Assembly (NCBI GenBank): GCA_025558095.1
Contig: JAIVFI010000001.1
Span: 1,543,649-1,607,648 of the forward strand
DNA from: Hyaloraphidium curvatum SAG 235-1
Lineage: Eukaryota; Fungi; Monoblepharomycota
DNA: 64,000 nt
Reading direction: 5' to 3'
Part shown: positions 2,892 through 49,028 of the stretch, piece by piece
Layout: each line of letters starts with the position of its first letter
How positions within the stretch are numbered: position 1 is the first letter of the stretch
Program-made: the position numbers and the translations under genes
The notes under the pieces: generated by a model
Seen by the model: the letters and a program-made list of their open reading frames with translations, nothing else
What the model was told of the DNA's origin: nothing
Database searches by the model: none

Positions 2892-4499
2892 TCACCTGAT
2901 CGGACAGAACGTCTCGACTGTCGCAAACACCCCCGCCGACCGCAATATGCTCCAGAGCCCCACTCCCAGCGTGAACAGGGTCGCCAGCAGCGTCCTCAGC
3001 ACCGAATACCCGACCGCGAACCCCAAGAACCGCGCCTTGTACCTCCCGACCTCGGCCTGCACCGCCAGCACCTTCTCGTGGTACCCCAGGTCCTCTCGTA
3101 TCCCGGGGGCCGCGCGCGGGGAGCGGGCGAGCAGCAGCCCGAGCTCGTCCCGCGCCTGGGCGTAGAGCAGCCCGACGGCGTCCACCTGCGCGTTGCTCAC
3201 GGCGAAGCTGGCCAGCTCGAAGGCCTGGTACGCCAGGCTGATGCCCAGCGCGCCGAGGGTCCACATGGTGATGCAGGAGCCGGTCGAGGCGGTGATGACG
3301 GAGCACAGGACGACGTTGCCCAGGGTTGACCACACGAAGAAGGCGAGGACGCCCTTGCCGTCGTCAAGGCGGTTCTGCCAGACCCGCATCAGGATCTGGT
3401 GCAGCCCTACGTGCTGCTCGTCCGCGTCCGGGCGAAGGGGATGGCCGCTTTCCAGAGAGCGCCTGGCGGTCTCGAGAAAGGACGAGAGCGAGAGGGACAC
3501 GGCCCTGTGGTGGCCCCGCAGGAGGAGCTCGAGCAGCCCGGGGTTCCAAAGCTGCAGCTGCATCATTGATCCAAAAAAGACGTAGAGCAGGCCGCAGACG
3601 ATCACGACGCAGGCGGGCAGCGCTGTCCACCACGTGGTCCAGGTGCGGCCGGCGAACGTCACCATCGGCGTCCAGAGCGAACCCAAGATCGTGACCAGCT
3701 GGGGCAGCCCGACGACAACCGTTCGTAGCAGTGCGTGCCACGCGGAGCGCGTGACGAGGCCGCCGGCGCAGCGGGGAAGGGGGCAAGGGCAGAGTTCGGG
3801 GCGGGATGGGTCGTGGTCGAGGAGCCTGACCATCCCCTGGGGCGGTATGCACCCGCTCTCGGCATTTTGCGAGAGCGTTTGGAGGTTTGCACACGAAAGC
3901 TGTGGCTCCCGAGCGGTATTGCTTGCTGGCTTTCCCCGCTCATCCGGGCATTCCTGCACGCCGCCTCCCAGGCGGCCGTTCCCCACCAGCTCGAGCCACC
4001 TGACAATGACGGCCCACGGCACACTGTTGAGCCCATCGTCCGGTCGCGCCCGGCCCATGGTGTACCAATACCTCGATATGGCCTTGGTGGCGACAAAGAA
4101 GAGCGCCGAGCATGTCCAGTTCCACAGAACGGCGGCGGTGCCCGCCACAAGCTGGCTGTGCCCAAACTGCCCGTCGTTGAACAGGAACACCGCGGTGCAG
4201 AGTGGAACCAGGGCGAGGACCGCGGCGGCGCTCAGGGCGTCGTTATGTACGGTGTGTGGTCCCAGCGAGAGGGACACCCGTGCTACCGTCCTCGTCGCGG
4301 GGAACGGTATGAGCGCGTCCAGCAGCCTCTTTGGCGTCACGGCATATGCTTTGCGAAAGTCTGCGGCCGTATCCGCGGGCCCCGGGGCGCCGGAGAGCGA
4401 GGGGGGGATGCGCGGCCAGGAGGGGAAGAGGAACGTTAATTCCTGCGGCGTGAAGCCGACGGGGCGCGGAGGCGCGTCTGGCACAGAGTCTGAGGCCAT
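2892..4499 (-). CDS. 7-TM membrane protein, gustatory-receptor-like/DUF3537-like (7TMIC candidate), copy 1, intact, 535 aa
   Basis: Single open ORF with seven hydrophobic segments, a CPCPLPRC loop motif and the C-terminus RYKARFLGFAVGYSVLRTLLATLFTLGVGLWSILR. Confidence 0.8.
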   Translation of the reverse strand: MASDSVPDAPPRPVGFTPQELTFLFPSWPRIPPSLSGAPGPADTAADFRKAYAVTPKRLLDALIPFPATRTVARVSLSLGPHTVHNDALSAAAVLALVPLCTAVFLFNDGQFGHSQLVAGTAAVLWNWTCSALFFVATKAISRYWYTMGRARPDDGLNSVPWAVIVRWLELVGNGRLGGGVQECPDERGKPASNTAREPQLSCANLQTLSQNAESGCIPPQGMVRLLDHDPSRPELCPCPLPRCAGGLVTRSAWHALLRTVVVGLPQLVTILGSLWTPMVTFAGRTWTTWWTALPACVVIVCGLLYVFFGSMMQLQLWNPGLLELLLRGHHRAVSLSLSSFLETARRSLESGHPLRPDADEQHVGLHQILMRVWQNRLDDGKGVLAFFVWSTLGNVVLCSVITASTGSCITMWTLGALGISLAYQAFELASFAVSNAQVDAVGLLYAQARDELGLLLARSPRAAPGIREDLGYHEKVLAVQAEVGRYKARFLGFAVGYSVLRTLLATLFTLGVGLWSILRSAGVFATVETFCPIR

Positions 4500-4940
4500 G
4501 AGAGCGGTTCTCGAGGTCGGAATAAGGATGCAACGTCCGCGGTTGAGGTGGTGTTGACTAGAGGTGGCTCGTCAAACGTCCGCGTCCCCGGCTCCCAAGG
4601 CTTCGGATCGGGCCTGTCGATAACTTCGAGCATTGCTCTCGAGTGCTACGCCATCAATTGCTACGATTCAGGTCGCGAGCAACCGACGAGCGGTGTTTTG
4701 TCCCTCCTGGCGCGCTTGACTGGTTCCTCTGCGTAGTATCTTTGTCCTTCCTTAGGTTAAACTTGCTTTCTCATACCTACTTTCGAATGACTGTGTACTG
4801 GAGGCTTGCGGCGTCTTTCCAGTTGATGGAGCGGGGCGTTCCGGTGCACAGTGCCGAAGCATGGAACATTCCGGGCGGGGAACAAATCCTCAACGACCTC
4901 ATCTCTTCTCACCACCGTGCCGACCTCCGAAACCGTTTAC

Positions 4941-6543
4941 ATGGCGTCGGAATCCTTATCGGACGCGCCTCCGTGCTCCGCGGGCTTCACTCTCCAGGAA
5001 TGGGCCTTCCTCTTCCCATCCTGGCCCGTCATTCCCCCCTCCCTCTCCGGCGTCCCGGGGCCCTCGGATCCGGCGGCAGACTACCGGAAGTCGTACCCCG
5101 TGACACCACAGACGCTGCTGGACGCGCTGAAACCGTTCCCCGTGACGAGGGCGGTCGCTCGGCTCTCGCTCTCGCTGGGCCACCACGTTACAAAGAGCGA
5201 CCTCGTGAACATCGCCCTGCTTCTCTCCATGGTGCCAATCTGCACCGCGGCGTTCCTTTTTGACGAAGGACAGTTCGGCCGCACCCAGCTTGTGGCGGGC
5301 ACCGCTGCGCTGTTTTGGAACGCGAGCTTCGTTGTCCTCTTCCACGTCGCCGTAAAGGCCATCTCGCGGTACTTATTCACCATGGGGCGTGTGCAAACGG
5401 ACGAGGCACTCAATGGGCTGCCTTGGGCCGTCGTGGTCAGGTGGCTCGAACTGGCCGGGAGCGCCCCGGAAAGTGCCCCGGATCGGTGCAGCGTGGAATC
5501 AACAGGGGCTGGCAGCACCGCCCGTGCGACGCACCAGTCATCCGCGTACCTCCGCACGCTCTCACATCGCGCTGAAGGCCGCGGCAAACCCCCCCGGCGG
5601 GCGGGACAGGCTCCTCGCGCACGATCCCGCCTGGCCCGACCTCTGCCCCTGCCCGCTCCCCCGCTGCGCCGGCGGCTTCGTCGCCGGCGCGTCGCGGCAC
5701 GCGCTGCTCCGCATGATCGTCGTCGCGCTGGCGCACTTTGTCGTGTACCTCGGCTGGCTCTGGACGACAGCGGTCACGTTCGCGCCGCGGAGCTGGAGCA
5801 CCTGGTGGACGGCGATAGCGGCCTGCGCCGCGATCGCGTGCAGCATCCTGTACGTCCTCCTCGGATCGCTGTTCCAGGTGCAATTATGGAACCCTGGCCT
5901 GCTCGAGCTCCTGCTGCGGGGCCACCACCGGGCCGTCTCGTTGTCTCTCTCGTCCTTCCTGGAGGCCGCCCGGTATTCCCTCGAAACGGGGCGGTCGCTC
6001 CCGGACGACGCGGACGGGCTGCATGTCGCGCTGCACCAGATCCTGACGCAGGTGTGGCAGAAGCGCCTCGACGACGGCAAGGGCGTCCTGGCCCTCTTCG
6101 TATGGTCGACCCTCGGCAACGTCGTCGTCTGCTCCACTATTACCGCCTCGACCGGCTCCTGCATCACCATGTGGACCCTCGGCGTGGTCGGGATCAGCCT
6201 GACCTACATCGCGTTCGAACTCTCGAACTTCGCGGTGAGCAACGCGCAGGTGGACGCCGTCGGGCTGCTGTACGCCCAGGCGCGGGACGAGCTCGGCCTG
6301 CTCCTCGCCCGCTCGCCCCGCACGGCTCCGGGGATCCGGGAGGACCTGGGGTACCACGAGAAGGTGCTGGCTGCGCAGGCGGAAGTGGGGAGATACAAGG
6401 CACGGTTCTGCGGGTTCGCAGTGGGATACTCGGTGCTGAGGACGTTGCTGGCGACGCTGTTCACGCTGGCGGTGGGCCTGTGGAGCGTACTGCGGTCGGC
6501 GGGGGTGTTTGCAACCGTCGAGACGTTCTGTCCGATCAGGTGA
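4941..6543 (+). CDS. 7-TM family copy 2, divergent from copy 1; one +1 frameshift in a C7 run at ~5589-5595
   Basis: The N-half (MASESLSDAPP...) lies in ORF 4851.. and the C-half in ORF 5389..6543. Both are highly similar to copy 1, and removing one C restores colinearity. Confidence 0.75.
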
Positions 6544-6689
6544 ATCATTGTCGCTCCAAGGTTGGAAATGAATGTCCGCTTGTTGTCTCTAGGGTGCCTG
6601 TTGCCGTTGCTGGACGAGACACATCGGCCAATTCCGCCGCCCTTTCGCCGCCCCGTACGAAACCTCCTCCTCCCGTCCGAGAGACCGCC

Positions 6690-7100
6690 ATGTCCGCCGT
6701 CCGCGCCTCGCCGTACCTCCTCTTCGCCGACGGCTGCGAGGCCGCACTCTCCTCCTACGCGGCGCACGGGCTCGGCCGCGTGACGTCGCTCGTCCGCCAC
6801 GGCGAGGGCGGCCTGCCCCTGCCGAACCCCGCAATGCGCGGCAAGGTCGCGCACGCGCTGTTCGAGGGCCCCGGAATCATGCTGTTTGCGTCGGACAACG
6901 ACGACGCGGAGCCGATGCGCGGCCACGCGATGTTGCTGGAATTCGGGGACGCGGGGAGGGCGCGGGCGGTGTTCGACGGGCTGGCAGAGGGGGGGCGGGT
7001 GACGACGGCGTTTGAAAAGCAGCCGTGGGGGGATCTATACGGCAAGCTGGTGGACGCGTTCGGGGTGCAGTGGATGGTGAAGTGCGGTGCGCCCCCTGAG
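6690..7100 (+). CDS. VOC/glyoxalase superfamily PhnB-like protein (3' end uncertain, probable intron at 7100)
   Basis: MSAVRASPYLLFADGCEAALSSY...KVAHA...FDGLAEGGRVTTAFEKQPWGDLYGKLVDAFGVQWMV is the typical PhnB-like signature. Confidence 0.8.
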
Positions 7101-7298
7101 GTGCGTCCGGGAGGGCGTCGGAGGGCGAGCATTTCGCTGAAGAAGTTCGATCCCGCTGCAGGTGCAGCTGACCGGAGCGATCTGACAACCACGGAAAAGG
7201 TCGTCGCTGGTTCCAAAAGCTCGATTCGCCGAAGACAGCGGGCTTCCTGTACGACCATTCCCGCCCACCCTTGTCGGTTCCGTCGCCGCCCGCCCCTG

Positions 7299-7985
7299 TC
7301 AGTCCAAATCGCCTCCAAACATGGCCGCCAGCACCGCGCCGTAGTCGGCAAACCCGTTGGGGATAACGTACACGGGCAGCGGGGCCAGCTGCGCGTCCAT
7401 CACATTGGCCGCGGCCCACCACACCTCCAGGTACCGCGTCACCCCGTCCAGCGTCGTCTCGGGCATGTCGTCCAGGAACCCCAGGATCGACACGGTGATG
7501 GGCTGCTCCTGGTTGGTGCCCTCGCCGTTTGTCACCTGCGCGACCGCGACGGCGCGCTGGGACGGCGCCCAGGCGGCGTAGTTGGCCGCGCCCGGGGTCT
7601 GGAACGAGAGCAGCCACGGCTCGAGGTCGGAGCACCACTTTGCGTCCACGCAGTCCCCGTCGAGGCAGCACCCCGCGCAGCTTTCGGGGGCGCACTGCGG
7701 GCACCCCTCGGCACTGCACTCGCCCATGGTCTCGCCAGGGGGGACTATGCAGCAGCCCGCCTTGCACAGCGGCAGCCCCGCTCCGCAAGGTTCGCCGTCG
7801 GGCGGCGGCGGCGGCGAGGGCGGCGCGCAGAAGAAGGGGTCGGCGCACACGCCCTCGGCGATGCAGCCCGTCGTGCAGGGTGCGCAGCTGCCGGTGGCGC
7901 AGACGGTGACGGTGCACTGCGCGTGCGCCGCGGGGAGCAGGCAAAACACGGAGAGCAGCGCGGCGAGGAGGGCAGCGGTCCGCAT
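7299..7985 (-). CDS. Small secreted cysteine-rich protein
   Basis: Signal peptide MRTAALLAALLSVFCLLPAAHA, followed by a Cys-dense N-terminal region with a Pro linker. Confidence 0.65.
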   Translation of the reverse strand: MRTAALLAALLSVFCLLPAAHAQCTVTVCATGSCAPCTTGCIAEGVCADPFFCAPPSPPPPPDGEPCGAGLPLCKAGCCIVPPGETMGECSAEGCPQCAPESCAGCCLDGDCVDAKWCSDLEPWLLSFQTPGAANYAAWAPSQRAVAVAQVTNGEGTNQEQPITVSILGFLDDMPETTLDGVTRYLEVWWAAANVMDAQLAPLPVYVIPNGFADYGAVLAAMFGGDLD

Positions 7986-8250
7986 CGCGTCGGAAGCAGG
8001 CGATGTAGGTAGTGGCCGCAGCACCCGCGATCGCTCCCCGTCCCCCTTTCCCCGGCATCGCAACAAGAGACGAGATCAAAATCACTTGATTGAATCTGAT
8101 TCCCCCTTCGATCTTCCGAGTTGACTAGAGAGCTGCCTCCGGCGCGCAAGGACCAGCGCCAAGCCCGCAGGAGAGCGAGATCATCAACAACCTCCTCAAC
8201 AACCAACTTGCGGGCCCTCACACTTCGATTCCGCCTTTGAAACCGTTTCG

Positions 8251-9565
8251 ATGGCGTCAGAATCCTTATTGGACGCACCCCCGCGCGGCGCCGGCTTCAC
8301 GCCGCAGGAATGGGCGCCGGCTTCACGCCGCAGGAATGGGCCTTCCTGTTCCCCTCCTGGCCCCGGATGTCTCCTTCCCTCTCCGGCCTTCCGGGGCCGG
8401 CGGACTCCGCCGCAGACTTCCGCAAAACACATGCTGTGACGCCCAAAACGCTGTTAGACTCGCTCGCCCCTTTCCCCGTGACGAGGACGTTCGCTCGGCT
8501 TTCCCTCTCGCTGGGGCCGCACAGCGCGAACAGCGACGTCCTGAGCGCCGGCCTGGTCGTCGGCCTAGTTCCGCTCTGCACCGCGGTGTTTCTGCTTAAC
8601 GACGGGCAGTTTGGTCGCGCCCAGCTCGCAGCGGGCACCGCCGCGGTGTTGTTGAACTGGACCTGCGCCGGGCTCTTCTTCGTCGCGAGCAAGGCCATAT
8701 CGCGATCCTGGTTCACAATGGGCCGCGTGCAGACGGACGACGGTCTGAACGGGGTGCCGTGAGCCGTTGCGGCCAGGTGGCTCGAGCTGGTCGGGAGCGG
8801 GCCCCCGGGAAGCGTGCTAGACCGACAGGACGAGGGAGGGAACGCAACAAGCACTGCAGCCCGAGAGACGCACCTTCGTCCTTTTTGGATCTATGCTTCA
8901 TCTGCAGCTTTGGAACCCCGGTCTGCTCGAGCTCCTCCTGCGGGGCCACCACAGGGCCGTGTCCCTCTCGCTCTCGTCCTTTCTCGAGACCGCCAGGCGC
9001 TCTCTGGAAAGCGGCCATCCCCTTCGCCCGGACGCGGACGCGCAGCACGTAGCGCTGCACCAGATCCTGATTCAGGTCTGGCAAAACCGCCTGGACAACG
9101 GCAAGGGCGTCCTGGCCCTCTTCATGTGGTCCACCTAAGCTACGTTGTCCTGTGCTCCGTCATCACCGCCTCGACCGGCTCCTGCATCACCATGTGGACC
9201 CTGAGCTCACTGGCCACCAGCCTGGCGTACCAGGCCTTCGAGCTGGCCAGCTTCGCCGTGAGCAACGCGCAGGTGGATGCCGTTGGCCTGCTCTACGCCC
9301 AGGCGCGGGACGAACTGGGCCTGCTCCTCGCCCGCTCACCCCGTGCAGCGCCGGGTATCAGGGAAGACCTGGGGTACCACGAGAAGGTGCTGGCGGCGCA
9401 GGCCGATGTGGGCAGGTACAAGGCGCGGTTTCTTGTGTTCCCTGTGGGGTATTGGTGCTGAGGACGCTGCTGGCGACGCTGTTCACGCTGGGGGTCGGGC
9501 TGCGGAGCATACTGCGGTCGGCTGGGGTGTTTGCGACGGTGGAGACGTTCTGTCCGACGAGATAA
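8251..9565 (+). pseudogene. 7-TM family copy 3, pseudogene
   Basis: 26-bp tandem duplication at 8290-8341, TGG>TGA at 8760-8762, internal deletion of the TM3-TM4 region, TAA at 9136-9138 and a frameshift at ~9455. Otherwise very similar to copies 1 and 2. Confidence 0.85.
8290..8341 (+). repeat. Perfect 26-bp tandem duplication
   Basis: gccggcttcacgccgcaggaatgggc x2. Confidence 0.9.
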
Positions 9566-9872
9566 GTGTGGAATCGATTCGTGGGATCGATCTCCTTCGC
9601 AGGAAGGAAGTTGGCCTAGAGGTCACTCCGCATCCATGTCCCCTACGCCGACCGCCGCCGCGCCTGCGCTCTCGTCGTCCCCGTCGCCCATGTTCTCCCT
9701 CCCCCATTCCAAGTACTCGGCGCCCGATGCGCGGAGCACAGGAGAGTCGGAGACGATCAGAGATCTGATCAGAGGCCGATGCGGCTCCCGGCGTTCGTTT
9801 CCTTCGTGCGGCACGATGATGGCATTAGCTTTCAATCGCTCGACCCGACAGTGTTGATTCCACTTGGCAACC

Positions 9873-10475
9873 CTATTCGTCCCGATCATGCCCTTCCTGG
9901 TCTCCTTCCACAGTCAGCTCGACTTCAACATCCACCACATCAGCCTCGTCGCCATTATCTTCTTCGCCGTTCCAGCCAATCTCCTTTGCTTCCGCATCAG
10001 TGATGACGGATTGCTCCATCTTCCCGAGCCTCAGCTCCGCCACGCCGGAAGCCCGGAGCACTTTCAGGCACTGGCGCATCCGGAGTGGGTCACCGAACAT
10101 ATTCTCCCGCAGGAACAAGGTCAATCCCTCCTTGAAAGTCAGAATCGGACGCGTGGGAAGCATGCGCAGCTCCTCGACGAACCGCGCCATGCCCTCGGGT
10201 TTGTCGTGTGCTTCGATCCAGAAGGCGTCGATGCGCAGAGTTTCCAACGTCGGCGGCAGCCTTATCTCGCCCAATCGAGAGGCAGGATTGATTTTGTTCA
10301 GGCGGAGGTGCTTGACAGAACCAATGCTGGCCAGGTCCTCGAACGAAGTCAGGTCGGCACCGTGGATGTCTCCTTCGGGACCTCCCGACGCATCGACCGA
10401 CTCGGGCCGAAACGCCGGGAGTGCCGAAAGCGCACTGAAGAGGTCCCAGTCCAGGACCGTGTAGCGCTTCCACAT
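9873..10475 (-). CDS. LRR-like 'PAFxP' family protein, copy B
   Basis: 200-aa ORF: WDLFSALSALPAFRPESV...SVKHLRL...LPPTLETLRI...RFVEELRMLPTRP. Confidence 0.55.
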   Translation of the reverse strand: MWKRYTVLDWDLFSALSALPAFRPESVDASGGPEGDIHGADLTSFEDLASIGSVKHLRLNKINPASRLGEIRLPPTLETLRIDAFWIEAHDKPEGMARFVEELRMLPTRPILTFKEGLTLFLRENMFGDPLRMRQCLKVLRASGVAELRLGKMEQSVITDAEAKEIGWNGEEDNGDEADVVDVEVELTVEGDQEGHDRDE

Positions 10476-15153: not shown

Positions 15154-15700
15154 TCATTCGTTTTCGGCCCTCGCCATCTCCTCAAGCCAGGAGGCAATCT
15201 CCCCATTACGATCCGGGATCTCCAGGTCCACGTGTTCGGCTGTCCGGAGCACCTCGAGGCAGCGGGACACTCGCCGCGCATCATCGGGAGTGCGGTCGTC
15301 CTCCAGGTCCTTCCAACTCAGAAGGTCAAACTTGCAAGCCTCCAGCTTGGCGCGCGTCGGGAGCTTGCGCAGCTCCTCCGCAAACGCCCGCATGGTCTCG
15401 GGTGTGTCCTGGTCCCCGATCCGGACCTGCCGCAGCGTGAGCTCCTGCAGTGCGGGCCAGACGACGATGCTGTCGAGGCGTTCGACGCAGTAGCGGTGCA
15501 GGTACAGGCTGCGCACGCTGTCCTGCCTCGCCAGACACTCGAATCCTCCTCCGTCGGCCCGTCGTCCGGCGGGTCCTCGTGGCCTTCCACGGCGGTCGGC
15601 CTGAACGCCGGCCGGCGGCACATCAGCCGGAACAGGGACCAGTCGTCGGGCGAAGATCGACGGCAAAGGCCGCGGCCGCGTCGACCGAGCGGATCGCCGA
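15154..15700 (-). pseudogene. LRR-like 'PAFxP' family copy C, frameshifted
   Basis: DWSLFRLMCRRPAFRPTAV in one frame; SVRSLYL...WPALQELTL...RAFAEELRKLPTR in another. Confidence 0.5.
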
Positions 15701-22379: not shown

Positions 22380-22390
22380 AGAATTCGATC

Positions 22391-38100: not shown

Positions 38101-40230
38101 CGCGCCGCCATCTCCGTGCCTCCGGGACGCCCCGAGGTCGCCACCGTGTCCTTGCCCTTGAAGGTGCGCGAGAGCCACCCCTGGAACCCGCCCGGCGCCG
38201 CCGGCGCGGCGGTGGCGATCGTGTCCCCGCCGTAGGCGCCGCGGCGGACCGTACCGCCCATGCCTCCGGGGATGGCGCCCGGAGGGCCGGGTGGTCCGCC
38301 GCGGCCGCCGCCGCGCCGCGGCTTGGCGTCGGGGAGCACCTTGATCGGCGGTTCCCAGACGAAGCTGGCGTCAGCGAGGACGATGGCGGCGTTCGGGTCC
38401 ACGGGCGGCGGGGGGGCGGAAGGGCGTGTGGCGGGGAGCGAAGCGGGGCCGGGGGCGCCGGTGCCGGTCTTGGTGGGGACGGGGGGCAGGTCCTCGTCGC
38501 CGACCTCGGGGGCGAGCAGCATGGCCTGCACGCGGCCCATGGAGACCCAGGCGTCGGTGGTGCTGGTGATGACGAGCGGGAGCATCATGAGGGGCTGGGC
38601 GTGACGCTAGTCAGCTGAGCTGGGACCCAGCGGCGGGAAGCGACGCACCATCCGGAGCACGTTGAAGAGCGCGATCGACGAGAACACGACGGGAGGGGAG
38701 AGCGGATTGTTGAGCGAGTAGACGACAAAGGTGAGCACCGAGGCCAGGACCGGCGAGGTCATGGTGATGCCGGTGATGTACGCTCTGTGGGATGAAGGCA
38801 ACACAAGTGCGTCAGCCCCGGCGGAAACAGATGCCTCGCCCAACCCACCTCCAGTTCCCGATCCGCCTTACGTTCACCAGCTCCTGCCTCCGCACCTCCC
38901 CCAGGTGCTCCTCCATCGCCCCCTCCCACCCCAGGAACTTGATCACCCTGATCCCCGCCACCGTCTCCTGCGTCATCCTGACCCTCTTGTCCGTCATCGC
39001 GTTGGCCTGCACCCTGAGCCTCATCAGGAAGCGCATCACGTAGGCCTGCAGGGGGAGCAGCAGGAGCAGCAGCGCCATGCCGACCAGCGCCGACGGCCCG
39101 AGCTGCGCGACCAGCAGCCCGAGCGCGACGAGCACGACCATCGGGGCCGACCACAGCGTGTGCAGCTGGTACGACGCCGTGTCGAGCCGCGAGCAGTCGA
39201 CCGACATGAGGTTGACCGTCTTGCCGGCCGTGAACTCCGCGCGGGCGGCCTGGCTGAGGCGGAGCGTCTTTCCGTAGATGGCCTGGATGAGCGCCGCGCG
39301 GACCTGGAACCCCATGCGCAGGGCGCGGTTCATGTAGGCGTTTGTGGCCAGGGTCGAGAGCAGCTGGATGGCGAACAGGGTGCCGGCCATGGCGTAGCCG
39401 AAGCCCTTGGAGCGGCCGGGGACGGCGCCGCCGCCCGAGACGACCTCGAGGAGGTAGCGCAGGACGACGGGGGAGGCCAGGTTGCAGCCCTCCGAGAGGA
39501 GCTTGAGGAAGCCGGCCCAGACGAACTGCAGGCGGTACGTGTCCCAGAGGGCTCGAAGCAGCGACGGCGCGGCCTTGGCCTCGGCCTTTTCGGCGGCGGT
39601 CCTCTTCTCGCCCTTCTTCTTTGGCGGCGGCGGGGGCTTCCACGGGCCCCGCTTGGCCATCTCTGGCGCCCAGTTGGCCTGGAACTTGCCGGCGATGGTC
39701 TCGGCGCGGTAGCCGTCCATGAGCGGGTACAGGTCGTCCTGCCTGAGCGGCCGGGCGCCGCCGAGCAGCATCAGCGGCGTGAGCCACCACGCCGAGAGCA
39801 GCGACAGGAAGTTGGCGCTCTCCTCGGGCGACCTGCCGCCGTGCGACCACTCCGGCAGCGGCGCCGTCTGCGTGCGCGCCGAGATCGGGTCGTGCGAAGG
39901 CGGGGCGTCGTCCGGGGTTGTCCCGTTGGGTTCCTTCGAAGGGAGGCCCCCGCTGGCGGCCGCCCCCGCTCCGCCCCCTCCAACGGCCTCGCTGTCCGCG
40001 AAACCGCTCTTCCGATCACTGCCCTCCGCGCCATCGACCGGCGGCGTGGCGTCCGACTCGGCGTCGCCCTCGGCCGCGCCGTCCCCCGCGCGCGACGCGA
40101 GCAGCTCCGCGCCCTCGGCGCCCCGCGGCATCTCCGCCTCGGCGACGAGCTCCGCGTCGGCGAGGTACTCGGAGAACGCAGCCGCGTCGGCGGACCGCGA
40201 CCCGGCGTCGGGGCCGGGAGACGAGGCCAT
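35114..40230 (-). CDS. ABC transporter subfamily C (MRP/YOR1-like), multi-exon
   Basis: Two TMD/NBD halves. NBD1: GRVGAGKSS, LSGGQKAR, LLDDPLSAVD. NBD2: GRTGAGK, LSQGQR, MDEATASVD, TIAHRL. Confidence 0.95.
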
Positions 40231-40594
40231 TTTGGATCTCGGGTTTAGGCGAGCTGCGCGGGCGGGGAAGCGGAGGTGACGCGCAAGACAGGGATCCTTT
40301 CCACCCATTACGAAACCCCGGATGATGGGCGCATTTGAGCTAAAATGATACATCTGGATCTTTGGTCCTCGATGCCATATCGTCCCTGGGCCGGGGTGCC
40401 TCTGAGCAGCGGGTTGCCGACTGTTCCGCAGCGCCATACACTGTGCGGCCTTGATGTCTGACCAGACGACGAAGATTGCGCCGATCGGAGATAAAGCATC
40501 GATGGACGGATAATGATGAGCGGACCATGTTTCCCTCGTATTCCGGCGTCGAACCACGTGCTGGCCGCGTTCCATCGAACGCTCCCTCTCGACG

Positions 40595-41042
40595 ATGGGA
40601 GACAAACACGTCAGCGCCGATTTTTCCGAATCCGAATGGCTCGCAATCGTCCCCTCGCCGCCCGCGCCCGCCGGCTCGGGCGCGCTGTTCCGCGGCGGCG
40701 GCGGGGAGCAGCCACGGCCGCGCCTCGACGTTCCTGCTCTTTCTCGCGCGGGTGCACTTCGCCGTAGTCCCGTGGGCGTCGAGGATCCTCCTCAGGGCCG
40801 GCCTCTGGTCGCTTGCGGCTGGCGCGGTGGTGCTTTCCGAGCTCGCGTTCAACGACGGGCGGTACGCCGTGCCGCAACTCGCTGCCGGCCTGTTTGGGAC
40901 CCTGTTCTGCCTCCTGCTCCAATCTCTCGTCGTTCTTCCCTCCGCTCTGACGCAACTGTGGAAGTCTTTCGCCCCGGCAAAAAGCAAGCGCGGCGATGGC
41001 CCCCCCTTCGGAGCCCGACTCGCACGCGCTTGCGGGGCTCGT
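40595..41042 (+). pseudogene. 7-TM family copy 4, 5' half (interrupted by the retrotransposon)
   Basis: DFSESEWLAIVPSPP ~ GFTPQEWAFLFPSWP; LAFNDGRYAVPQLAAG ~ FLFNDGQFGHSQLVAG. Ends at the TSD, with two small frameshifts. Confidence 0.75.
41029..41042. repeat. 14-bp target-site duplication, left copy (cttgcggggctcgt)
   Basis: Identical 14-mer at 47982-47995. Confidence 0.9.
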
Positions 41043-41085
41043 GTAATGAGGAGCTAGCAATCCCACCGTACACTTAGAAATCCCC

Positions 41086-44000
41086 CTACGCCCCAAGAAT
41101 CAGCTCCTCATCTACATTCAAACCAAAAGCGACCGGCGCGGGGGCCGGAGCGTTGACAGCGGCGGCTTCGGTGCACAGCTGAAGCCAGTGTTGGAGTTGG
41201 GCCGCGACGCCAAGAGCCCAGGCCACCGCGATCCGTTCGCGGAAGCGCCGCACAAAACGAGAGTAAAGGCCATCGAGGTCCACGGGCTGCCCATCGCGGC
41301 CGACGATCCCGGGATACTGGATGCGCCCCATCTCCGAGGAGAAGCGCGAGAAAGTGGCAGAGACAGCGCTGTACGAATCAAAAGCAAGCACGATCAGAGG
41401 GTAGAAGTTGGCGTTGAAGACGAAACGGGAGTAGTCCTTCCTGGCGGCCTCGACCCGCCGTTCGACTGCGTGGCCCGGGACCGAGAAGACCAGGCCCGTG
41501 TGCAAATGGGCCATAGAGGTGAGGGTCTTGATCTCGAGCAACCACCGTTTCCGGGTTTCGCGGTGCGTGATGAGAATGTCGCCAAGGCGGCCAGCATCCG
41601 CAGGCGTGGGCGGGGTGACAGTCTCGTAGCCATGCGCAAGGAGGTTTGGCGGCATGGGGTGCACGCGGAGGAGCGGGATGGAGCGAAGCGCCGCGCGGAT
41701 GGCCGCGCAAATGTCGTCGTGACCAGGACTGAAGAGATCCCGGCCATAGCAGCCCGAGAACGCGTGCTCCCCCGTCAGCGACATGGCCGATCGCTTGCAG
41801 CCCCGCCGGCAGGGCAAGGAAAGACCAGGGTAGTCGGCCTCGTGCAGGAGCGGGAGGCAAAGCCGGAAGCGTACAAGTAAGCGGAAAAAGTTGTTGCGAA
41901 TGTGGTTGGCAAGCAGCGCGGGAGAGGCAGTCAGGAAAGCCGACAGGCCGTCCTGCGCCTGGACGAGCCGCTTGCGGCGCTCCAGACCAGCGGAAGTGTC
42001 GGGTTGCAAGGCAATCAGAGCCGCGAGGCGGCGCTGGTCCTCGAGACGCGTAAGGTCGCTCTGCAGGCCGTGCCAGACCGGCTGAGCGAAGAAACTGGCG
42101 TCCGCAGGGAGCGTACGGCGGGCGGGCGCGGCGCCCACCGGTTGCCCAGCACGCGCAGCCTCGGCGTACGCTGCGGCCGTGTCATCCTCGACACGCTCAA
42201 AGGCGGGGCGGAGGGCCTCGATGACAGGAACCAGTTCCCGCACGTGCTCCACGCCCACACCCCGGGCCGAGGTTCGAAGACCAAGCATGGCGTCCAAGGG
42301 GCCCGCCGTGAGGTTGAGTGAAGACAGGTAAGCCGCCGAGACCACCTTCTCCGATGACAGAAGCCCCATCCCCGAGTAGTGCAGACCCAAGAATACCTGC
42401 TCCCGCACAGTCCGACCCTCCACCGACAGCGGATCCAGATCCTCGGCCCGATCTCCCAGCAAGCGCAAAAAGGTGGTGAAAAGCGCGTTGTCAAGACGTC
42501 GAGCAAAGGGTTGGGTAACCGAGGGGGGGAGAATGCGGAGCCAAAACGAGAAGAGCTGGGTCACACAGAGACGGAGGAGGGAGTACAGGCCCTGGAGGGA
42601 GGGGATGTCGGCCGGCATGGCGTAGCCGAGCGCGGCGCGCTCGATGTCATCGAGAAGAGCGGCAATGGAGTCGATCTTGGCCGCGAGGAACGACTCCACG
42701 TAGGCAGGGGTGCCGACCGGGGCACCTACCACCTTGAGGCCGCACGAGCGAGCGAAGTCAGGCGAGCCCGGGGCCGACGCCGTGGCATGCACCTCGGGGT
42801 CGGCCTCGTGAGGCGGGAAGCCAGCGACGCGGATGTTGTGGGCCGCACCGGCCGCGCGCACCCGCTCCAGCACGGCCGGGTTCGTCGAGAGCGAAAGCAG
42901 GTAGCTCTTGTCCGGGCGGTGGGTCATGCCGAGGGAAGAAAGGCCGTCACGCACCTCTCCCAGGACGGCCATGACCGAGTCCAGCGGCCCGACCACGGTG
43001 AGGTCGTCGAGGTACCCAAGGATGAGGCAGTCGGGGTGCCCAGAGCGGATGGGCCGCAGCATGCGGCTCATGGCGCAGGAGAAGATGGCAGACGACAGCG
43101 GGTCGCCCTGGATGTTGCCCTCGTACATGGTGATCCGGAAAAGGAGCTCCGCCGAGCGCCGGTCGCGGAAGTAGGCGTGGGAAGGGCGCGAGTAAACGAG
43201 GTTGTAGTACGGGATAAGCTGAGGCACCTGGCGGACCACCTCGCGCGCGAAGAGGCGGCGCAGCGTATTGAAGGCGTTCCTAGAGTCGACCTTCATGACG
43301 ACGTGGTCGGGGAAGGCCGCCAGCCACGCGTTCACCGCGTGGGCGGTCGCCTCCGCGCCCCCGTCCACCCCGTGACCCAGGTCCTCCTGCTGTTGGAGCT
43401 TCCTCAGAAGAGCCTTGTGCCGCACGGCCAGGTACGAGCCCGCGAGCCGCGTGATGCCCTCCATAATGCCAATCGGCCGGAGCCCCCCCTCCGGCTTGAG
43501 CAGAGGGACGAGGATTTGATCCGTGAGGAGCGGCCGGAGCATGGGGGTGTCGAGTCGGCCAGTGCACACGCCGTGCACCATGGCCGCCAGCGGGCGGAGC
43601 TTCCGCCGCGTCGCGTCGTTCTCGCAGTTGTGCACGATGAAAAGTTTGGCCATGCTGAAACCCGACATGCCGGCCCCCACGCCGTCCTTCTTCCGGCGCA
43701 ACCGGGCCCAGATGTCCTCCAGGAAAGCCGCGTCCGTGTAGGCAGGGCAGGGCGCGGGCGCGTTGGGGGGCAGAGACAGCCGACACAGCGGCTCTCCCTC
43801 CCGCGGCCCCGGGTACAGCTCCTCCAGTTCCGCCTGAAGCGTGGGCGTGAAGCCAGCCGGAACGGCCTCCCCCGAGAGGGCCGCGGACGCAGCACCAGGA
43901 GCGCCCTTCAAGGCGGCAAGCACGATGGACTTGAAGAGCTGGTAGTTGAGCGGCCGCAGCCCGTCCCGCCGCGCGCCCCGGTTGACCTGACGGGCGGCGA

Positions 44001-44997
44001 AGTAGTTCTGCTCGTACATGTAGTCCCCCGACATGACGTAGCCGCCAAATGCAAGGTAGGCGGTGAGAGTGCGGTGCAGGTCGGTTTCCGGCGCCGCCGG
44101 GTCCTCGTAGGCCCGTTGGAAAGACTCGCTGGCCCGGAAGGCGAGCGTGCTCCAGGTGGTGGTCCGGTAGCGGTGCTTCAGCGGCTCCGGCGGCGGCGCC
44201 CCCGCGCCCCCGCCCGGCGGCGGATCAGGCCCGGGACCCCCGGGTGGACCACCGTCGCCCGGGTCGCCCGGATCACCGCCGTTGCCGTGCCCGCCAGCCG
44301 CGGCGTTGCCGCCCGGCGCGCCGTCGCCGCCTGGGGGATCACCGCCGTCCGGGGCGGCACGCGCCGCCGCCGCCGCCGCCGCCAGCGCCGCCCGTTGCGC
44401 CTGGCCGTCCTGCGGGGCGTCGGCCGCAACCCGGGCGGCCGCAAGGGCCGCCATCAGCGCGGGCGCGGGTGGCGAAGCACGGGGAGATGCCGACGATGCC
44501 GCTGGTGACGCCGGTCCCTCCGCGCGTCCCGTGGCAGCCGCCCGCTCGGCACGCACGCGGTCGAGGAACTCGACGAGATCGGGTGGAAGCGAAGCTAAAG
44601 AGACGCCGAGTGGCGGGTTAGCTGCGTCCGGGTTGCACGAGGTGTGCTGTCCAGAAACACCGGCACCAGAGGCGTTTGCGGCGTAGGGACGCCGGCAACC
44701 CCCGCACCGCGCTAGCCCCATGGCGCGCAACGCATCGGCAGACAGGCGCTGCATCGCCAACCAGTGCTCCGGGCTCCGTGTGACCCGAAGATGACCGTCC
44801 CGTTTGTTTTTGTTTGGAGTTGGCTGGAAGCGGCAACCATCAACCGGGCACGCATGGAGGCCGGGTTCAGCAGGCGCCTCCGCCATCGGCACATCGCCGT
44901 CGATGCAAGATTGGTGATGATGAGATAGAGCTCCGATGTTGGCGAAAGCTGCCGCGCAGCGGTGGCAGCTGTAAGGCAGGAGCGGCGTGCGGCTCAT
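41086..44997 (-). CDS. Retrotransposon ORF: C2H2-like Zn finger, reverse transcriptase, CCHC and PD-(D/E)xK-type endonuclease
   Basis: YSCHRC..F.....LSHH; PLLKPEGGLRPIG; GVDGGAE; KVDSRNAFN; GNIQGDPLS; YLDD; LKVVGAPVG; CRRGC...GEHAFSGC; HDDI; RLGDILI...LLEIK. Confidence 0.92.
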   Translation of the reverse strand: MSRTPLLPYSCHRCAAAFANIGALSHHHQSCIDGDVPMAEAPAEPGLHACPVDGCRFQPTPNKNKRDGHLRVTRSPEHWLAMQRLSADALRAMGLARCGGCRRPYAANASGAGVSGQHTSCNPDAANPPLGVSLASLPPDLVEFLDRVRAERAAATGRAEGPASPAASSASPRASPPAPALMAALAAARVAADAPQDGQAQRAALAAAAAAARAAPDGGDPPGGDGAPGGNAAAGGHGNGGDPGDPGDGGPPGGPGPDPPPGGGAGAPPPEPLKHRYRTTTWSTLAFRASESFQRAYEDPAAPETDLHRTLTAYLAFGGYVMSGDYMYEQNYFAARQVNRGARRDGLRPLNYQLFKSIVLAALKGAPGAASAALSGEAVPAGFTPTLQAELEELYPGPREGEPLCRLSLPPNAPAPCPAYTDAAFLEDIWARLRRKKDGVGAGMSGFSMAKLFIVHNCENDATRRKLRPLAAMVHGVCTGRLDTPMLRPLLTDQILVPLLKPEGGLRPIGIMEGITRLAGSYLAVRHKALLRKLQQQEDLGHGVDGGAEATAHAVNAWLAAFPDHVVMKVDSRNAFNTLRRLFAREVVRQVPQLIPYYNLVYSRPSHAYFRDRRSAELLFRITMYEGNIQGDPLSSAIFSCAMSRMLRPIRSGHPDCLILGYLDDLTVVGPLDSVMAVLGEVRDGLSSLGMTHRPDKSYLLSLSTNPAVLERVRAAGAAHNIRVAGFPPHEADPEVHATASAPGSPDFARSCGLKVVGAPVGTPAYVESFLAAKIDSIAALLDDIERAALGYAMPADIPSLQGLYSLLRLCVTQLFSFWLRILPPSVTQPFARRLDNALFTTFLRLLGDRAEDLDPLSVEGRTVREQVFLGLHYSGMGLLSSEKVVSAAYLSSLNLTAGPLDAMLGLRTSARGVGVEHVRELVPVIEALRPAFERVEDDTAAAYAEAARAGQPVGAAPARRTLPADASFFAQPVWHGLQSDLTRLEDQRRLAALIALQPDTSAGLERRKRLVQAQDGLSAFLTASPALLANHIRNNFFRLLVRFRLCLPLLHEADYPGLSLPCRRGCKRSAMSLTGEHAFSGCYGRDLFSPGHDDICAAIRAALRSIPLLRVHPMPPNLLAHGYETVTPPTPADAGRLGDILITHRETRKRWLLEIKTLTSMAHLHTGLVFSVPGHAVERRVEAARKDYSRFVFNANFYPLIVLAFDSYSAVSATFSRFSSEMGRIQYPGIVGRDGQPVDLDGLYSRFVRRFRERIAVAWALGVAAQLQHWLQLCTEAAAVNAPAPAPVAFGLNVDEELILGA

Positions 44998-45845
44998 GGC
45001 GAATACGGTGGCGGCGGCGATGCCGGTGTCCCGCCGCCAGGATCAGCTACCGCGGACGGTGCCTTGTCCGACGAGATCTCCCAATCGTCGAGCGCATGTG
45101 TCCGCATCCAAACCTCCTGTGACTCGGTCAGGTCGCCCCCCGCCCTGTGCCAGGCCGCAAGCGCCGACCACGCGTCACCGATAGCATCACGGCCGCCGTC
45201 ATCGAGGAGCTCGGAACCTGGCCATTCGAGGTGCGCCGGCGAACCGGGCTCCGTGTGAGCATACCAAGGAGGCAAGGTGCGCGTCGGAGTGGATACTTCC
45301 GAGGAGCTCTGCCCCCCCCCGGCCGTTGGTGCCGGCGGCGTGCCGGGGGTTGTGCGGGGCGGCGCAGGCGGCAGCTGCAAGCTCGGCACGGCGGTTGCAG
45401 CTGGGGTTTCCCACGGAGGATGGCCTGGGTGCGCCGAGAGCATGGAAGCGGCCGAAGCCGGGGCATCAGCGATCAAGATCTGCGATGACGAGGAGGGAGA
45501 TACTTCCGAGCATGCCGCCCCTTTCCCCCCCGCTGGTGCCGGCAAGCGGGAGGAGCCGCGGGGCGGCGTGGGCAGAGTGTGACCCTCGGCCAAGCTAGGC
45601 ACGGCATTTGGCCGAGGGGCCCCGGGGGACGCGGGGTCAATGTCGGAAGTCTCCCCTGCTGCCGCGAACGGCCTCGGAACTCGGTGAGACGTTGTAGATA
45701 GTGGTAGTTGGCGTACCGGTGAAGACTGCAAAACAGCAAAAGATGGAGGGGCTGACCGCGCCCGGGAGGTATCCGGACGAGCTCGGCGCCGAGAAGAGCA
45801 GCCCACTACTCGGCGTTGCCACTTGCTTGGTGGTGTTTTAGGCAT
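44994..45845 (-). CDS. Retrotransposon middle ORF, Pro/Ser-rich, 283 aa, function unknown
   Basis: Its ATG overlaps the ORF1 stop (ATGCCTAA) and its TGA overlaps the RT ORF start (ATGA). Confidence 0.5.
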   Translation of the reverse strand: MPKTPPSKWQRRVVGCSSRRRARPDTSRARSAPPSFAVLQSSPVRQLPLSTTSHRVPRPFAAAGETSDIDPASPGAPRPNAVPSLAEGHTLPTPPRGSSRLPAPAGGKGAACSEVSPSSSSQILIADAPASAASMLSAHPGHPPWETPAATAVPSLQLPPAPPRTTPGTPPAPTAGGGQSSSEVSTPTRTLPPWYAHTEPGSPAHLEWPGSELLDDGGRDAIGDAWSALAAWHRAGGDLTESQEVWMRTHALDDWEISSDKAPSAVADPGGGTPASPPPPYSP

Positions 45846-47976
45846 TCAAGGACGGTGAGCCAGGAGCCGGCAGCAGGGATCCGGTTGACGTGGAGGCGGC
45901 CTTGGCCTGGGGGGAGCCGAGCTTGCGAACGGCCGCCTTGGCCTTCCGTTCCGCTTTGGCGGATTTGACGTCGATTTGCTGATACGGCTTGGCAACCTTG
46001 TCCGGGTTTGTCCCTGCCACATCCTCCACGGGACGGCCCTTGCCTGCGTGCTTGGGGCCTGGGGCCATCGTAGGATCACCAACCGCGGATGCCCCAGCGG
46101 CCTCATCGGCCGTGTGCATGTCTTCGCTTGGTGCCTCCGAGTTCGAACCATCGCCCTCAGCAGAGGCTTCGGAGGCGGCGTCGTTTCCACCCGAGGCCTC
46201 AGAGCCGGTGGCATCCTCCTCCATCGCAGATTCCGTGCCCTCCATTGCGGGAGCAGCAAGCTCCAGATCCTCCAGCGCGGTATTGGCTGCAACCTGCTGT
46301 GCAGCACTGCTGATGGCGTTCTCAGCGGCCAGCTGGTCGGCACCACCCATGTCCTCGTCCCCATCCTTGTCAGCCGGCTCCAAAATGGGAAGACCATGGA
46401 AATCCATCTTTTCGGCGGCGTCAGACTCCCCCCAATCGACCGAAGCACCGGCACCACCACCACCGAGTGCCGAAAACCTGTTGTGGGACGCCTTGGCCAC
46501 TGGCTGGGCAAGAGCTGGGGGCGCAGAGCCTGCGCGCTTGCCGGACGGCCCAGCTGTAAGCCACTCGTTGGCCGCAGGGGCGGTGGGGGAAGCCAGATGC
46601 GGAGGAACGACCTCTTCCCTCAGGGGGGGCAGCCGCGGGGTCGTGGCGGGCTCCACCGTTGGGGGAGAGAGCCGTACGTTGGCCGGGTTGTGAATGCAGT
46701 CCGCCTCGTGCGCACGGCGTGCTTGCGGGCTGGCAAAGGCGCCGGGATTCATGCGGTTGAGACCGTCTGGGCAGTAAGCACAGTTGGTGCACGTGGCATC
46801 GTCACCGACGTGGCCGCCCGTGCGCTTGCAGTGGCCGCACTGTCCGTTGCTACTGTCATAGCGGACAGCTGGGCGAAGGAGCTTGTGCTGGAGGAGTGTC
46901 CCCCACGAGTCAAGGAAGCAGTACGAGGGTGGGCCAATGCGTGCTGCGCGGTCAAAGAAGGCATCAACCCCGCACTGCGAGACGTCGAAAGTGACCCGCC
47001 AGAAGGCGTTGCTGTCGGTGCCCGAGATGGGAGCCGCTTCAATGACTTGGCAAGGGGCCCCATAGTGGTTCTGGAAAGTCGCGTAGAGGCGGGCCCACCA
47101 GTCCGGGCACTCGTGCACCGAACCAGGGACGATCATGGGCCCGATCTTGAGCTCGGCGTGCGTGTCCTTGAAGACAGGGTGGATGCGCAGCCGACGCGTC
47201 GGGCCGTTTGGGAACTTGACCTCCAGCACCCCCTGCTCCACCAAGGCGTTGATAGCGTCTGCCCCGTCGACAGCACCAACAACACAGAAGAGGTCCAGTC
47301 GCGAGTAACGCGGGTTGTAGCCTCGCGTCTCGGTCGTGAAGACGGTGGTGGGGAAGGTCGCCTTCGCCACGGCTTCGGCGACGACGCGCCGTCGGTCCTT
47401 TGGCACACCGTTGAGGTCGATGAGGCAGTGGGGGACAGGCCCAATGAAGGCCGGCGTGTAGCCCCGACCGTTGGCGTGCGGTTGCACCCGATCGATGAGC
47501 TTGGCGTAGTTGGTGGGCGCCGAGAAAGGCATGGCAGAAGCCAGATGCTCCGCCATCGCGCCGTCCGTGACACGAACAATCGGGCGGTCGGGCGAGGTGC
47601 GCGACGTTGCTGCGGCGAAAGAGCGAGACCCCAGGCGCGTGGCGGGGGCGGTTGCTTTCGGGAGACGATTCTGCGGAGCCGGCTCCTCCCGGGCGCCGCC
47701 GTTGGCGGACGCGGGGCGGATTTCAGTGGTCGATTCAGCAGCGTCCTCCTTAGAACCTGTCAGCTGAGCCGTAGCACCAGCGGGGGCCGGCGCGGGCTCC
47801 TCTGCCGCGCCAGGGAGGCGAGGAGAGGCAGCGACGCCGGGAGCGTGGGAAGAGTGGACGGGATTCGCAAGCGCCTCCGAGGAGGCCGCGGCGAGCGCAG
47901 GGGAGACCTTGCCATCAGGCAGGACCACGGGAGCGGCCGCATCATTGGGCCCCTGCCCTGTGTCAGGGGGGTCCAT
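45838..47976 (-). CDS. Retrotransposon ORF1, gag-like with a zinc knuckle
   Basis: First ATG inside the element (MDPPDTGQG). Contains CGHCKRTGGHVGDDATC followed by CAYC...H...C, with disordered termini. Confidence 0.75.
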   Translation of the reverse strand: MDPPDTGQGPNDAAAPVVLPDGKVSPALAAASSEALANPVHSSHAPGVAASPRLPGAAEEPAPAPAGATAQLTGSKEDAAESTTEIRPASANGGAREEPAPQNRLPKATAPATRLGSRSFAAATSRTSPDRPIVRVTDGAMAEHLASAMPFSAPTNYAKLIDRVQPHANGRGYTPAFIGPVPHCLIDLNGVPKDRRRVVAEAVAKATFPTTVFTTETRGYNPRYSRLDLFCVVGAVDGADAINALVEQGVLEVKFPNGPTRRLRIHPVFKDTHAELKIGPMIVPGSVHECPDWWARLYATFQNHYGAPCQVIEAAPISGTDSNAFWRVTFDVSQCGVDAFFDRAARIGPPSYCFLDSWGTLLQHKLLRPAVRYDSSNGQCGHCKRTGGHVGDDATCTNCAYCPDGLNRMNPGAFASPQARRAHEADCIHNPANVRLSPPTVEPATTPRLPPLREEVVPPHLASPTAPAANEWLTAGPSGKRAGSAPPALAQPVAKASHNRFSALGGGGAGASVDWGESDAAEKMDFHGLPILEPADKDGDEDMGGADQLAAENAISSAAQQVAANTALEDLELAAPAMEGTESAMEEDATGSEASGGNDAASEASAEGDGSNSEAPSEDMHTADEAAGASAVGDPTMAPGPKHAGKGRPVEDVAGTNPDKVAKPYQQIDVKSAKAERKAKAAVRKLGSPQAKAASTSTGSLLPAPGSPSLNA

Positions 47977-47981
47977 TCTGC

Positions 47982-49028
47982 CTTGCGGGGCTCGTTCGGT
48001 GGTCTCAGCTCGTTCAGGAGGGTTCCGTCCCGCCCGAAGCCGCGGAACAGGGCGGTGGCGAGGCCTCGGCGCCCGCCATCCCATCTCCCCTTCTGCAGCA
48101 CAAGGCCGGGGATCCCCTGTGCCCGTGTGCGGCTTCCACCTGCGGAGGCGCCCTCGTTCGAAGCGCTCCGCTCCTGTGCCATGTCGAGGCCATGTCGAGG
48201 CTGGTCCCGCTCACGACGTCGTGCTTCCTGATTCTCGCGACCCCTCTGCTGGTGCACCCCACGTATTGGACCTCGTGGTGGGCTCTATCGGGAGCGCTGG
48301 CCATCTTGGGTTGCCTGGATTTCGTCCCCGTCAACGTCCTGGGGCGCTTTGCTACGAACGCGTCGCTGCTGCGGCTTTCCGTCCGGGTTCAGCGCCGCGC
48401 CATGCTGCTTTCGCTCCGCCGCTTCCTCGACGGATTCGATAGGGCTCTGTTTTCCGGGAACGGCTGCGGGGAAAGGGAGCTTGCCGACGTGCAGCTCTAC
48501 GTCCAGCTGCACTACCGCCTGGCGGACGCCTGGGAAAGGCGCGTCCCGTTCCTCGTTTCGGGACACATACTGCTCGGCTTTTCGCTCGCTGGGACTGCGG
48601 TACCCTTCGTCGTCAACCTCGCCGCGGGTTCCTGCATCCCCGCCTACCTGGCCGCCGGCTTCGTCTTCATCTTGGCTATCACCGTCGCGGACCTCGTGCA
48701 CGTCGCGCTCTCCAACGAGCAGATCGAGCGCATCACGGAGCTCTACCGGCAGGCGCAGACCGAGATCCGGGACAAGATCGTGCGCGCACAGGCGCTCCCG
48801 CCAGATCCCGACCGAGCGCCCGTGCTCAAGGCGCTGAAAGGCCACGACAGGCTGCTGGACTCGTTCCTGCAGGTTTCGGGGTTCCGCGGCAAGTTTTTGG
48901 GGTTCGTGGTGGATTTCGGGGTGCTGAGGACGTTCCTCGTGACCATCTTCACCGTGATGGTCGGGCTTTGGTCGATCCTGCGGGGGTCCGTGTTCTTCAC
49001 GCTGGGCTCGATCTGCCCGTCGCGGTGA
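47982..49028 (+). pseudogene. 7-TM family copy 4, 3' half (begins with the right TSD)
   Basis: LVRWSQLV ~ IVRWLELV; LLQHKAGDPLCPCAASTCGG ~ LLDHDP..LCPCPLPRCAGG; C-terminus GFRGKFLGFVVDFGVLRTFLVTIFTVMVGLWSILRG. Confidence 0.85.

Follow-up and report, generated by a model that had tools for sequence, protein, structure and literature searches.

A family of seven-transmembrane proteins with a probable 7TMIC fold in the early-diverging fungus Hyaloraphidium curvatum

The seven-transmembrane ion channel (7TMIC) superfamily brings together the insect odorant and gustatory receptors (Or/Gr), the gustatory-receptor-like proteins (GRLs), DUF3537 and PHTF, and the criteria used to recognize its members have been laid out in two studies (PMC9998090; bioRxiv 2023.08.30.555482). 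One of its branches, the Class-B PHTF-like proteins, combines the stereotyped 7TMIC features with a long first intracellular loop (IL1) between the transmembrane segments TM2 and TM3 (Himmel et al. 2023, bioRxiv 2023.08.30.555482). In the literature searched, the fungal members are GRLs limited to one in each of two Spizellomyces species, SpunGRL1 and SpalGRL1, which are detectable by sequence and conserve a single one of the TM7 motif's four positions (Benton et al. 2020, PMC7746228). The same literature contains no report of a repertoire of hundreds for this channel type in fungi, and no link of Hyaloraphidium to 7TMICs or chemoreceptors. The present analysis concerns a stretch of 64,000 nucleotides of Hyaloraphidium curvatum SAG 235-1, hereafter the window, which constitutes the end of contig 1, the largest contig of the assembly (positions 1543649-1607648). 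It holds four copies of a gene family encoding seven-transmembrane proteins, whose fold is very likely that of the 7TMICs.

The initial annotation of the window, made from the letters alone, had proposed four paralogues of a divergent gustatory-receptor-like family. When the intact 535-residue open reading frame (ORF) of one of them, copy A, was compared with the window by tblastn, exactly these four loci and no others were recovered, with E-values from 0 to 1e-34; the closer paralogues L029, L025 and L008 served as additional queries. Copy A (2892-4499, minus strand) is intronless and uninterrupted over its 535 residues, as had been read, and it is the only intact copy of the window. Copy B (4941-6543, plus strand) is full length and misses this state by a single base, copy C (8251-9565, plus strand) is a pseudogene, and copy D is split by a retroelement. 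Statistics for the whole family were drawn from 84 aligned members, and this 84-sequence alignment was also used to build an AlphaFold2 (AF2) model of copy A, with a predicted local distance difference test (pLDDT) score of 88.6 and a predicted TM-score (pTM) of 0.87. A second AF2 model was obtained for L029, a close intact relative of copy D, and it displays the same helix pattern.

Hydropathy, AF2 secondary structure and loop statistics agree on the seven hydrophobic helices first noticed in the sequence, organized as three pairs with short loops followed by a final helix. The mean number of lysines and arginines per sequence is 5.8 in the N-terminus and 7.3, 8.8 and 8.1 in the cytosolic loops IL1, IL2 and IL3, whereas it falls to 0.5, 0.5 and 0.1 in the extracellular loops EL1, EL2 and EL3 and to 0.5 in the C-terminal tail. 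By the positive-inside rule, this very strong signal predicts a cytosolic N-terminus and an extracellular C-terminus, which is the orientation anticipated for a 7TMIC. The mean lengths of the loops are equally asymmetric, with 69, 68 and 66 residues for IL1, IL2 and IL3 versus 6, 15 and 4 for EL1, EL2 and EL3. IL1, where the best conserved motif is located, reaches 107 residues in copy A. On the published description, a place among the Class-B PHTF-like proteins is conceivable from the IL1 of copy A, but the mean IL1 of the family is about as long as its IL2 and IL3.

The two models provide further details. TM4, TM5 and TM6 extend as cytosolic helices of 30-50 residues, corresponding in copy A to residues 290-316 and 320-351, 359-407 (49 residues) and 412-459 (48 residues), and superpositions with Or/Gr structures suggest that they could pack in the cytosol as in the anchor domain of these receptors. 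The last helix is split, in copy A, into TM7a (465-482) and TM7b (498-521), and L029 shows the same arrangement; the intervening break (483-497) is centred on G493, a residue kept in 82 of the 84 members. The N-terminal segment is also conserved and contains short helices at residues 18-24 and 46-62, modelled in copy A with a pLDDT of 84-95; it would be a candidate for the re-entrant loop (TM0) listed among the 7TMIC criteria. TM7b is by far the best preserved helix, with a mean column identity of 0.58 compared with 0.29-0.36 for TM1-6. Its conserved residues T503, T507, T510, G514 and S517 span about 80 degrees of one helical face (calculated at 100 degrees per residue) and the stripe is bracketed by R502 and R520. 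By analogy with the insect channels, this small and polar face would be as expected of a pore-lining surface.

Two sets of residues appear to be signatures of the family. The first comprises H229, C237, C239 and C244 in IL1, which are invariant in all 84 members and follow the pattern H-x7-C-x-C-x4-C (the HCCC motif). The CPCxxxxC loop motif singled out in the initial annotation corresponds to the three cysteines, and the SNxQ...LYxQAxxE linker and the two terminal segments that it also listed are present as well. The HCCC region is confidently modelled (pLDDT 82-97) and probably forms a zinc site. The second set consists of C409 in EL3, which is invariant, and C532 in the extracellular C-tail, found in 82 of 83 members. 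Both adjoin a small predicted beta-bridge pairing residues 409-411 with 525-527, and they are probably joined by a disulfide.

The solved structures of insect receptors include the odorant receptors MhOR5 (7LIC), AaegOR10 (8V02), AgamOR28 (8V3D) and ApOR5-Orco (8Z9A/8Z9Z) and the gustatory receptors BmGr9 (8VC1), Gr43a (8JM9) and Gr64a (8JME). When the model of copy A was searched with Foldseek against 350,542 PDB chains, the 12 best matches were all insect Or/Gr, with a probability up to 0.99. In a search set of 48,161 PDB clusters, the insect Or/Gr/Orco proteins were the only full-length matches to the monomer models of both copy A and L029, which are 28% identical, and this result was obtained with two aligners. 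They alone aligned all seven helices in order, over about 300-350 residues, and no transporter or G-protein-coupled receptor fold outscored them. Five of the features by which 7TMICs are recognized are observed or predicted in the family: seven transmembrane helices, a predicted N-in/C-out orientation, long cytosolic and short extracellular loops, long TM4-6 and a split TM7, all of which it shares with insect Or/Gr. From these models, the assignment of the family to the 7TMIC fold can be made with high confidence. Outside the PDB, the best shape matches in the ESM Atlas were unnamed clusters from Cnidaria, Chlorophyta and a giant virus, with a TM-score of 0.51 normalized on the query and 0.66 on the target. 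Among named clusters, the language-model neighbours included DUF3537 (0.90-0.92), 7tm_7, Trehalose_recp, SRR and GUR. The plant DUF3537 family (PF12056) is by this measure the nearest 7TMIC family, with 176-189 of 256 features shared, and its predicted architecture is the same according to the literature (PMC9998090).

Several results weigh against this placement. The E-values of the Foldseek matches in the PDB are weak (0.02-0.5) and their TM-scores range from 0.26 to 0.42. The TYxxxxxQF motif of TM7, whose absence had been pointed out in the initial annotation, occurs in none of the 84 members, and relaxing the pattern did not change this. A sequence-profile link to 7tm_7 or DUF3537 was not obtained: a Pfam search with the four ORFs of the window and the 84 members returned no family, without any match to 7tm_7, 7tm_6, Trehalose_recp or DUF3537 at E <= 1, and the family profile gave chance-level matches only (E of about 0.5) against the PDB sequences. 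A six-frame search of the genome with PF12056 and PF08395 was also without match, which is weak evidence since the controls were equally silent. In the absence of a profile link, the case for homology is built on the fold and on weak language-model neighbours.

The same silence of the profiles would be expected if the likeness to Or/Gr were convergent or generic, that is, if the long cytosolic helices of an unrelated seven-helix protein matched the Or anchor domain by chance. The best named language-model neighbour, Tmp39/TMEM39, is not a 7TMIC and points in this direction too. This match, however, is flagged by the tool itself as probably wrong, no member of the family matches the Tmp39 Pfam model, and it finds no support in the structural searches; this candidate was therefore rejected. 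Convergence would moreover have to account for the fact that two independent aligners and two divergent paralogues single out one very small group of PDB clusters, that the agreement extends to all seven helices, and that three further traits concur, namely a split TM7, which is rare, an N-in topology and loops of unequal length on the two sides. It is accordingly held to be improbable, and homology with the 7TMICs is the likely origin of the shared fold.

The resemblance with the insect receptors goes beyond topology. In both cases, the C-terminal half is better conserved than the N-terminal half, and the repertoire is large and divergent and includes pseudogenes as well as duplicates in tandem or inverted arrangement. 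The differences are nevertheless substantial. The identity in structural alignments is only 5-13%, and to the missing TM7 motif and Pfam matches (7tm_6/7tm_7) must be added proteins that are about 100-150 residues longer, a conserved N-terminal region, the long IL1 with its HCCC residues, the invariant EL3 cysteine and the near-invariant cysteine of the C-tail, intronless genes and a fungal host. The chytrid GRLs resemble this family in coming from an early-diverging fungal lineage, in being candidate 7TMICs and in the degeneration of their TM7 motif. They are set apart, on the basis of their published descriptions, by the hundreds of members found here and by the lack of a link to GRLs through the sequence methods of the present analysis. 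Unlike the plant proteins, finally, no member or genomic locus matches the DUF3537 hidden Markov model.

The family extends far beyond the window. A six-frame search of the genome, with scores obtained for 81 out of 769 first-look candidates, detected at least 79 separate loci on 36 contigs, and this number is consequently a lower bound. When 1.84 billion representative proteins were searched exhaustively with HMMER, 346 of them were collected at E <= 1e-3, of which 260 at E <= 1e-10; most are annotated 'hypothetical protein', and a few belong to environmental relatives. Nine of ten full-length representatives sampled from the middle of the list are H. curvatum entries labelled 'hypothetical protein', and other matches come from metagenomes and Logan assemblies. 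The family probably numbers a few hundred members, which are typically 25-35% identical to one another. A word-indexed homologue search, run with a single protein and with an alignment, retrieved the window's own proteins only, the sole named relative being an H. curvatum hypothetical protein. A further member was observed at positions 8001-9697 of a 68-kb eukaryotic Logan contig (L031) from run SRR26194948, where it is represented by two adjacent ORFs of 428 and 124 residues, 42-60% identical to copy A. The conserved flanking genes of L031 share only about 70% DNA identity with the H. curvatum genome, which indicates that at least one relative of this fungus also possesses the family. These distributions support a family confined to the Hyaloraphidium lineage.

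Copies A and B illustrate how such genes arise and evolve. They are inverted duplicates arranged head-to-head, with a DNA identity of 78% over 1.65 kb, a region which covers the whole coding sequence, and are separated by a spacer of 441 bp (4500-4940) presumed to be a shared promoter region. Their nucleotide similarity stops about 20 bp outside the coding sequence, upstream of each ATG. In tblastn, copy B is matched from 4944 to 6543 in two frames that meet near 5590-5603; the frameshift is caused by a supernumerary base in the C7 run near 5603 (codon ~223), which lies within a poorly conserved part of IL1. The codon-level alignment with copy A reveals no stop codon and two in-frame gaps of 3 nt. 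Copy B may thus have become a pseudogene very recently, or the additional base may be an error of the assembly. From codon-level alignments, in which B and C were read column by column against copy A and placeholders filled the interruptions, the ratio of nonsynonymous to synonymous substitution rates (dN/dS) was calculated by region. Between A and B it amounts to 0.07 for IL3-TM7, 0.20-0.22 for IL2 and TM5-6, and 0.41-0.43 for TM1-4 (0.43 in TM1-2), for a synonymous divergence (dS) of 0.4-0.7, and it indicates that purifying selection acted on copy B during most of its past. Or/Gr repertoires are characterized by a variable pocket and a conserved pore, and the gradient observed here, low in TM7 and high in TM1-4, mirrors this pattern.

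By analogy with the solved Or/Gr structures, four subunits would assemble through a bundle of the cytosolic 'anchor' type, TM7b would line a central cation pore, and the fast-evolving half formed by TM1-4 and TM6 would constitute the ligand pocket. If this pocket exists, the genes would encode ligand-gated channels diversified into a repertoire, a function given roughly even chances, or slightly less. H. curvatum is not known to be motile, and it is hard to see what behaviour a set of chemoreceptors would drive in such an organism; this is a further point against a chemosensory role. The proteins could instead have the 7TMIC fold, probably by homology, and serve as constitutive or intracellular-membrane channels, in cell-cell or self/non-self recognition, or in stress sensing, with a copy number that would reflect another selective pressure. 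The PHTF, DUF3537 and trypanosome branches of the superfamily have no demonstrated chemosensory role (PMC9998090; bioRxiv 2023.08.30.555482), and the invariant cytosolic HCCC residues, which have no counterpart known in Or/Gr, point to a regulation specific to this family. Hundreds of intact paralogues with such a divergence, fastest in TM1-4 and tightest in TM7b, follow on the other hand the pattern of a ligand-diversified repertoire rather than that of a housekeeping protein, and a non-chemosensory function is regarded as rather unlikely. Considered as a whole, a lineage-restricted family whose intronless genes have about 500 codons each, encoding diversified ligand-gated channels of 7TMIC fold and subject to birth-and-death turnover, is the best explanation and a reasonably likely one. 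The stronger proposal, that a non-motile early-diverging fungus independently built a ligand-gated 7TMIC repertoire of insect size (hundreds of genes) equipped with a cytosolic zinc module, is put forward tentatively.

Copy C documents the decay of a family member. Its ATG, at 8251, was located by DNA alignment, and the tblastn matches come in pieces between 8316 and 9565. In this gene, 26 nt have been inserted near codon 22, W162 has turned into a stop codon, 1-nt deletions have occurred at codons ~391 and ~498, and a 315-nt deletion removes residues ~202-305, that is, the HCCC motif, TM3 and part of TM4. Its 3' half is 90% identical to copy A and its 5' half 79%. The 3' half has a dS of 0.29 to A versus 0.63 to B, while the 5' halves are about equally distant; copy C accordingly has a mosaic structure, of the kind that gene conversion or recombination would leave. 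The public gene model DFJ74DRAFT_701074 (300 residues) was built on this copy from three 'exons' (8310-8756, 8908-9126 and 9222-9458), and its 'introns' skip the stop codon, the deletion and one of the frameshifts. This model is an artefact laid over a pseudogene.

Copy D has met a different fate. Its N-terminal fragment (40583-41042, plus strand), with an ATG at 40595, was delimited by tblastn with L029, L025 and L008 and by its ORFs; it lies in three frames, which implies two frameshifts at about 40720-40747 and 40991-41002. The C-terminal part (47982-49028, plus strand) runs from a conserved A..VRW motif to the stop codon. Between the two, a retroelement of the non-LTR type (without long terminal repeats), 6,939 bp in length, occupies 41043-47981 on the minus strand, as defined by its ORFs, Pfam and a target-site duplication. 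It contains three consecutive minus-strand ORFs of 748, 283 and 1303 residues, overlapping by a few bases, and the last one matches the reverse transcriptase domain RVT_1 of Pfam with E = 8e-10. A perfect 14-bp target-site duplication, CTTGCGGGGCTCGT, brackets the element at 41029-41042 and 47982-47995, and the reading frame of copy D resumes across the junction through the A..VRW motif. The C-terminal half (tblastn match 47985-49028) is 32% identical to copy A. With intact genes on contigs 39, 19 and 10, in contrast, copy D shares 59-64% identity (63-64% to contigs 39 and 19 for its C-terminal part), and by these sequence comparisons it is placed in a subfamily different from that of A.

The inverted pair A/B, the decayed mosaic C and copy D, killed by a retroelement and frameshifts, support a birth-and-death turnover in the window. 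Young inverted and tandem duplicates and local clustering were likewise observed when the family was considered as a whole, in accordance with the lineage-specific dynamics first suspected. Adjacent loci are often mutual closest relatives, as in the pairs of contigs 9, 26 and 29, and close pairs are in excess among the scored loci, with 5 within 5 kb versus 0.9 expected. The term 'expanding', used in the initial annotation, is not appropriate for the window itself, which is mostly a graveyard: three of its four copies are broken versus about 6% genome-wide (5 of the 79 scored loci contain an internal stop), and the window is thus better seen as a place of decay than as a front of expansion. 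The loci are rarer in the centres of contigs, with a moderate distal bias (Kolmogorov-Smirnov p = 2e-5). A strict subtelomeric enrichment was tested and rejected, 13 loci lying within 50 kb of a contig end versus 13.6 expected.

Intronless genes dispersed on at least 36 contigs with a distal bias, and mostly broken among retroelements in the window, could also bring to mind selfish or non-functional repeated ORFs, such as the cargo of a mobile element whose copy number would be maintained by transposition. This scenario is hardly compatible with the 74 of 79 scored loci that are free of internal stops despite 25-35% identity, or with dN/dS values well under 1. The similarity between A and B also ends at the borders of the coding sequence, and neither common terminal repeats nor a transposase were found. 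Selfish propagation is for these reasons considered very improbable.

The chromosomal setting is that of a contig end, as the initial annotation had guessed in calling it a fungal-type subtelomere, although the repeat is not of the expected type. The window is terminated by TTAGG repeats (63828-64000, plus strand), with a few TTAGGG units at their inner edge. The usual fungal telomere repeat is TTAGGG, unlike this pentamer. Contigs 1-5 are closed by the same TTAGG repeat, and a 30-mer of TTAGG has 703 matches in the genome, all on the plus strand and at the 3' ends of contigs. The telomere is some 60 kb away from copy A and some 15-23 kb from copy D, and the GC content is 63-73% across the whole window. 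The neighbourhood is a typical chromosome-end mix, with retroelements and with genes for a multicopper oxidase (22394-24289, minus strand), an ABC transporter (36927-40605, minus), a flavin amine oxidase (49155-51113, plus) and an alginate-lyase-domain protein (51226-53370, plus). The membrane and ATPase parts of the ABC transporter are encoded in separate ORFs, and this gene is hence probably spliced. At 61602-63836, an ORF of 744 residues with Retrotrans_gag and Ty3-capsid domains continues directly into the telomere repeats; the telomere seems to have cut short, or to cap, this Ty3-like element.

A second small paralogous family was observed in the same region, at 2266-2763 (plus strand), 9873-10475 (minus) and 15202-15600 (minus). 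Its members are 31-43% identical, have leucine-rich-repeat-like motifs and are without a Pfam match. One copy is positioned tail-to-tail with the seven-transmembrane copy A and another adjoins copy C, and an old unit of two genes may accordingly have been duplicated in inverted orientation.

Some consequences for annotation are immediate. The members of the seven-transmembrane family bear the label 'hypothetical protein', and among the public gene models at least one, assigned to copy C, is an artefact. If the proposed interpretation is correct, a massive diversification of 7TMIC-class proteins would have occurred outside animals as well, and expansions of the 'olfactory type' would not be an animal invention. 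A branch that cannot be recognized by sequence, and that carries a cytosolic HCCC module, would join the tree of the superfamily. These intronless microbial genes, easily expressed, would in addition be available for the study of 7TMIC gating and ligand recognition and for electrophysiology and structural work, and what a non-motile planktonic fungus senses with such a repertoire would become a question in its own right.

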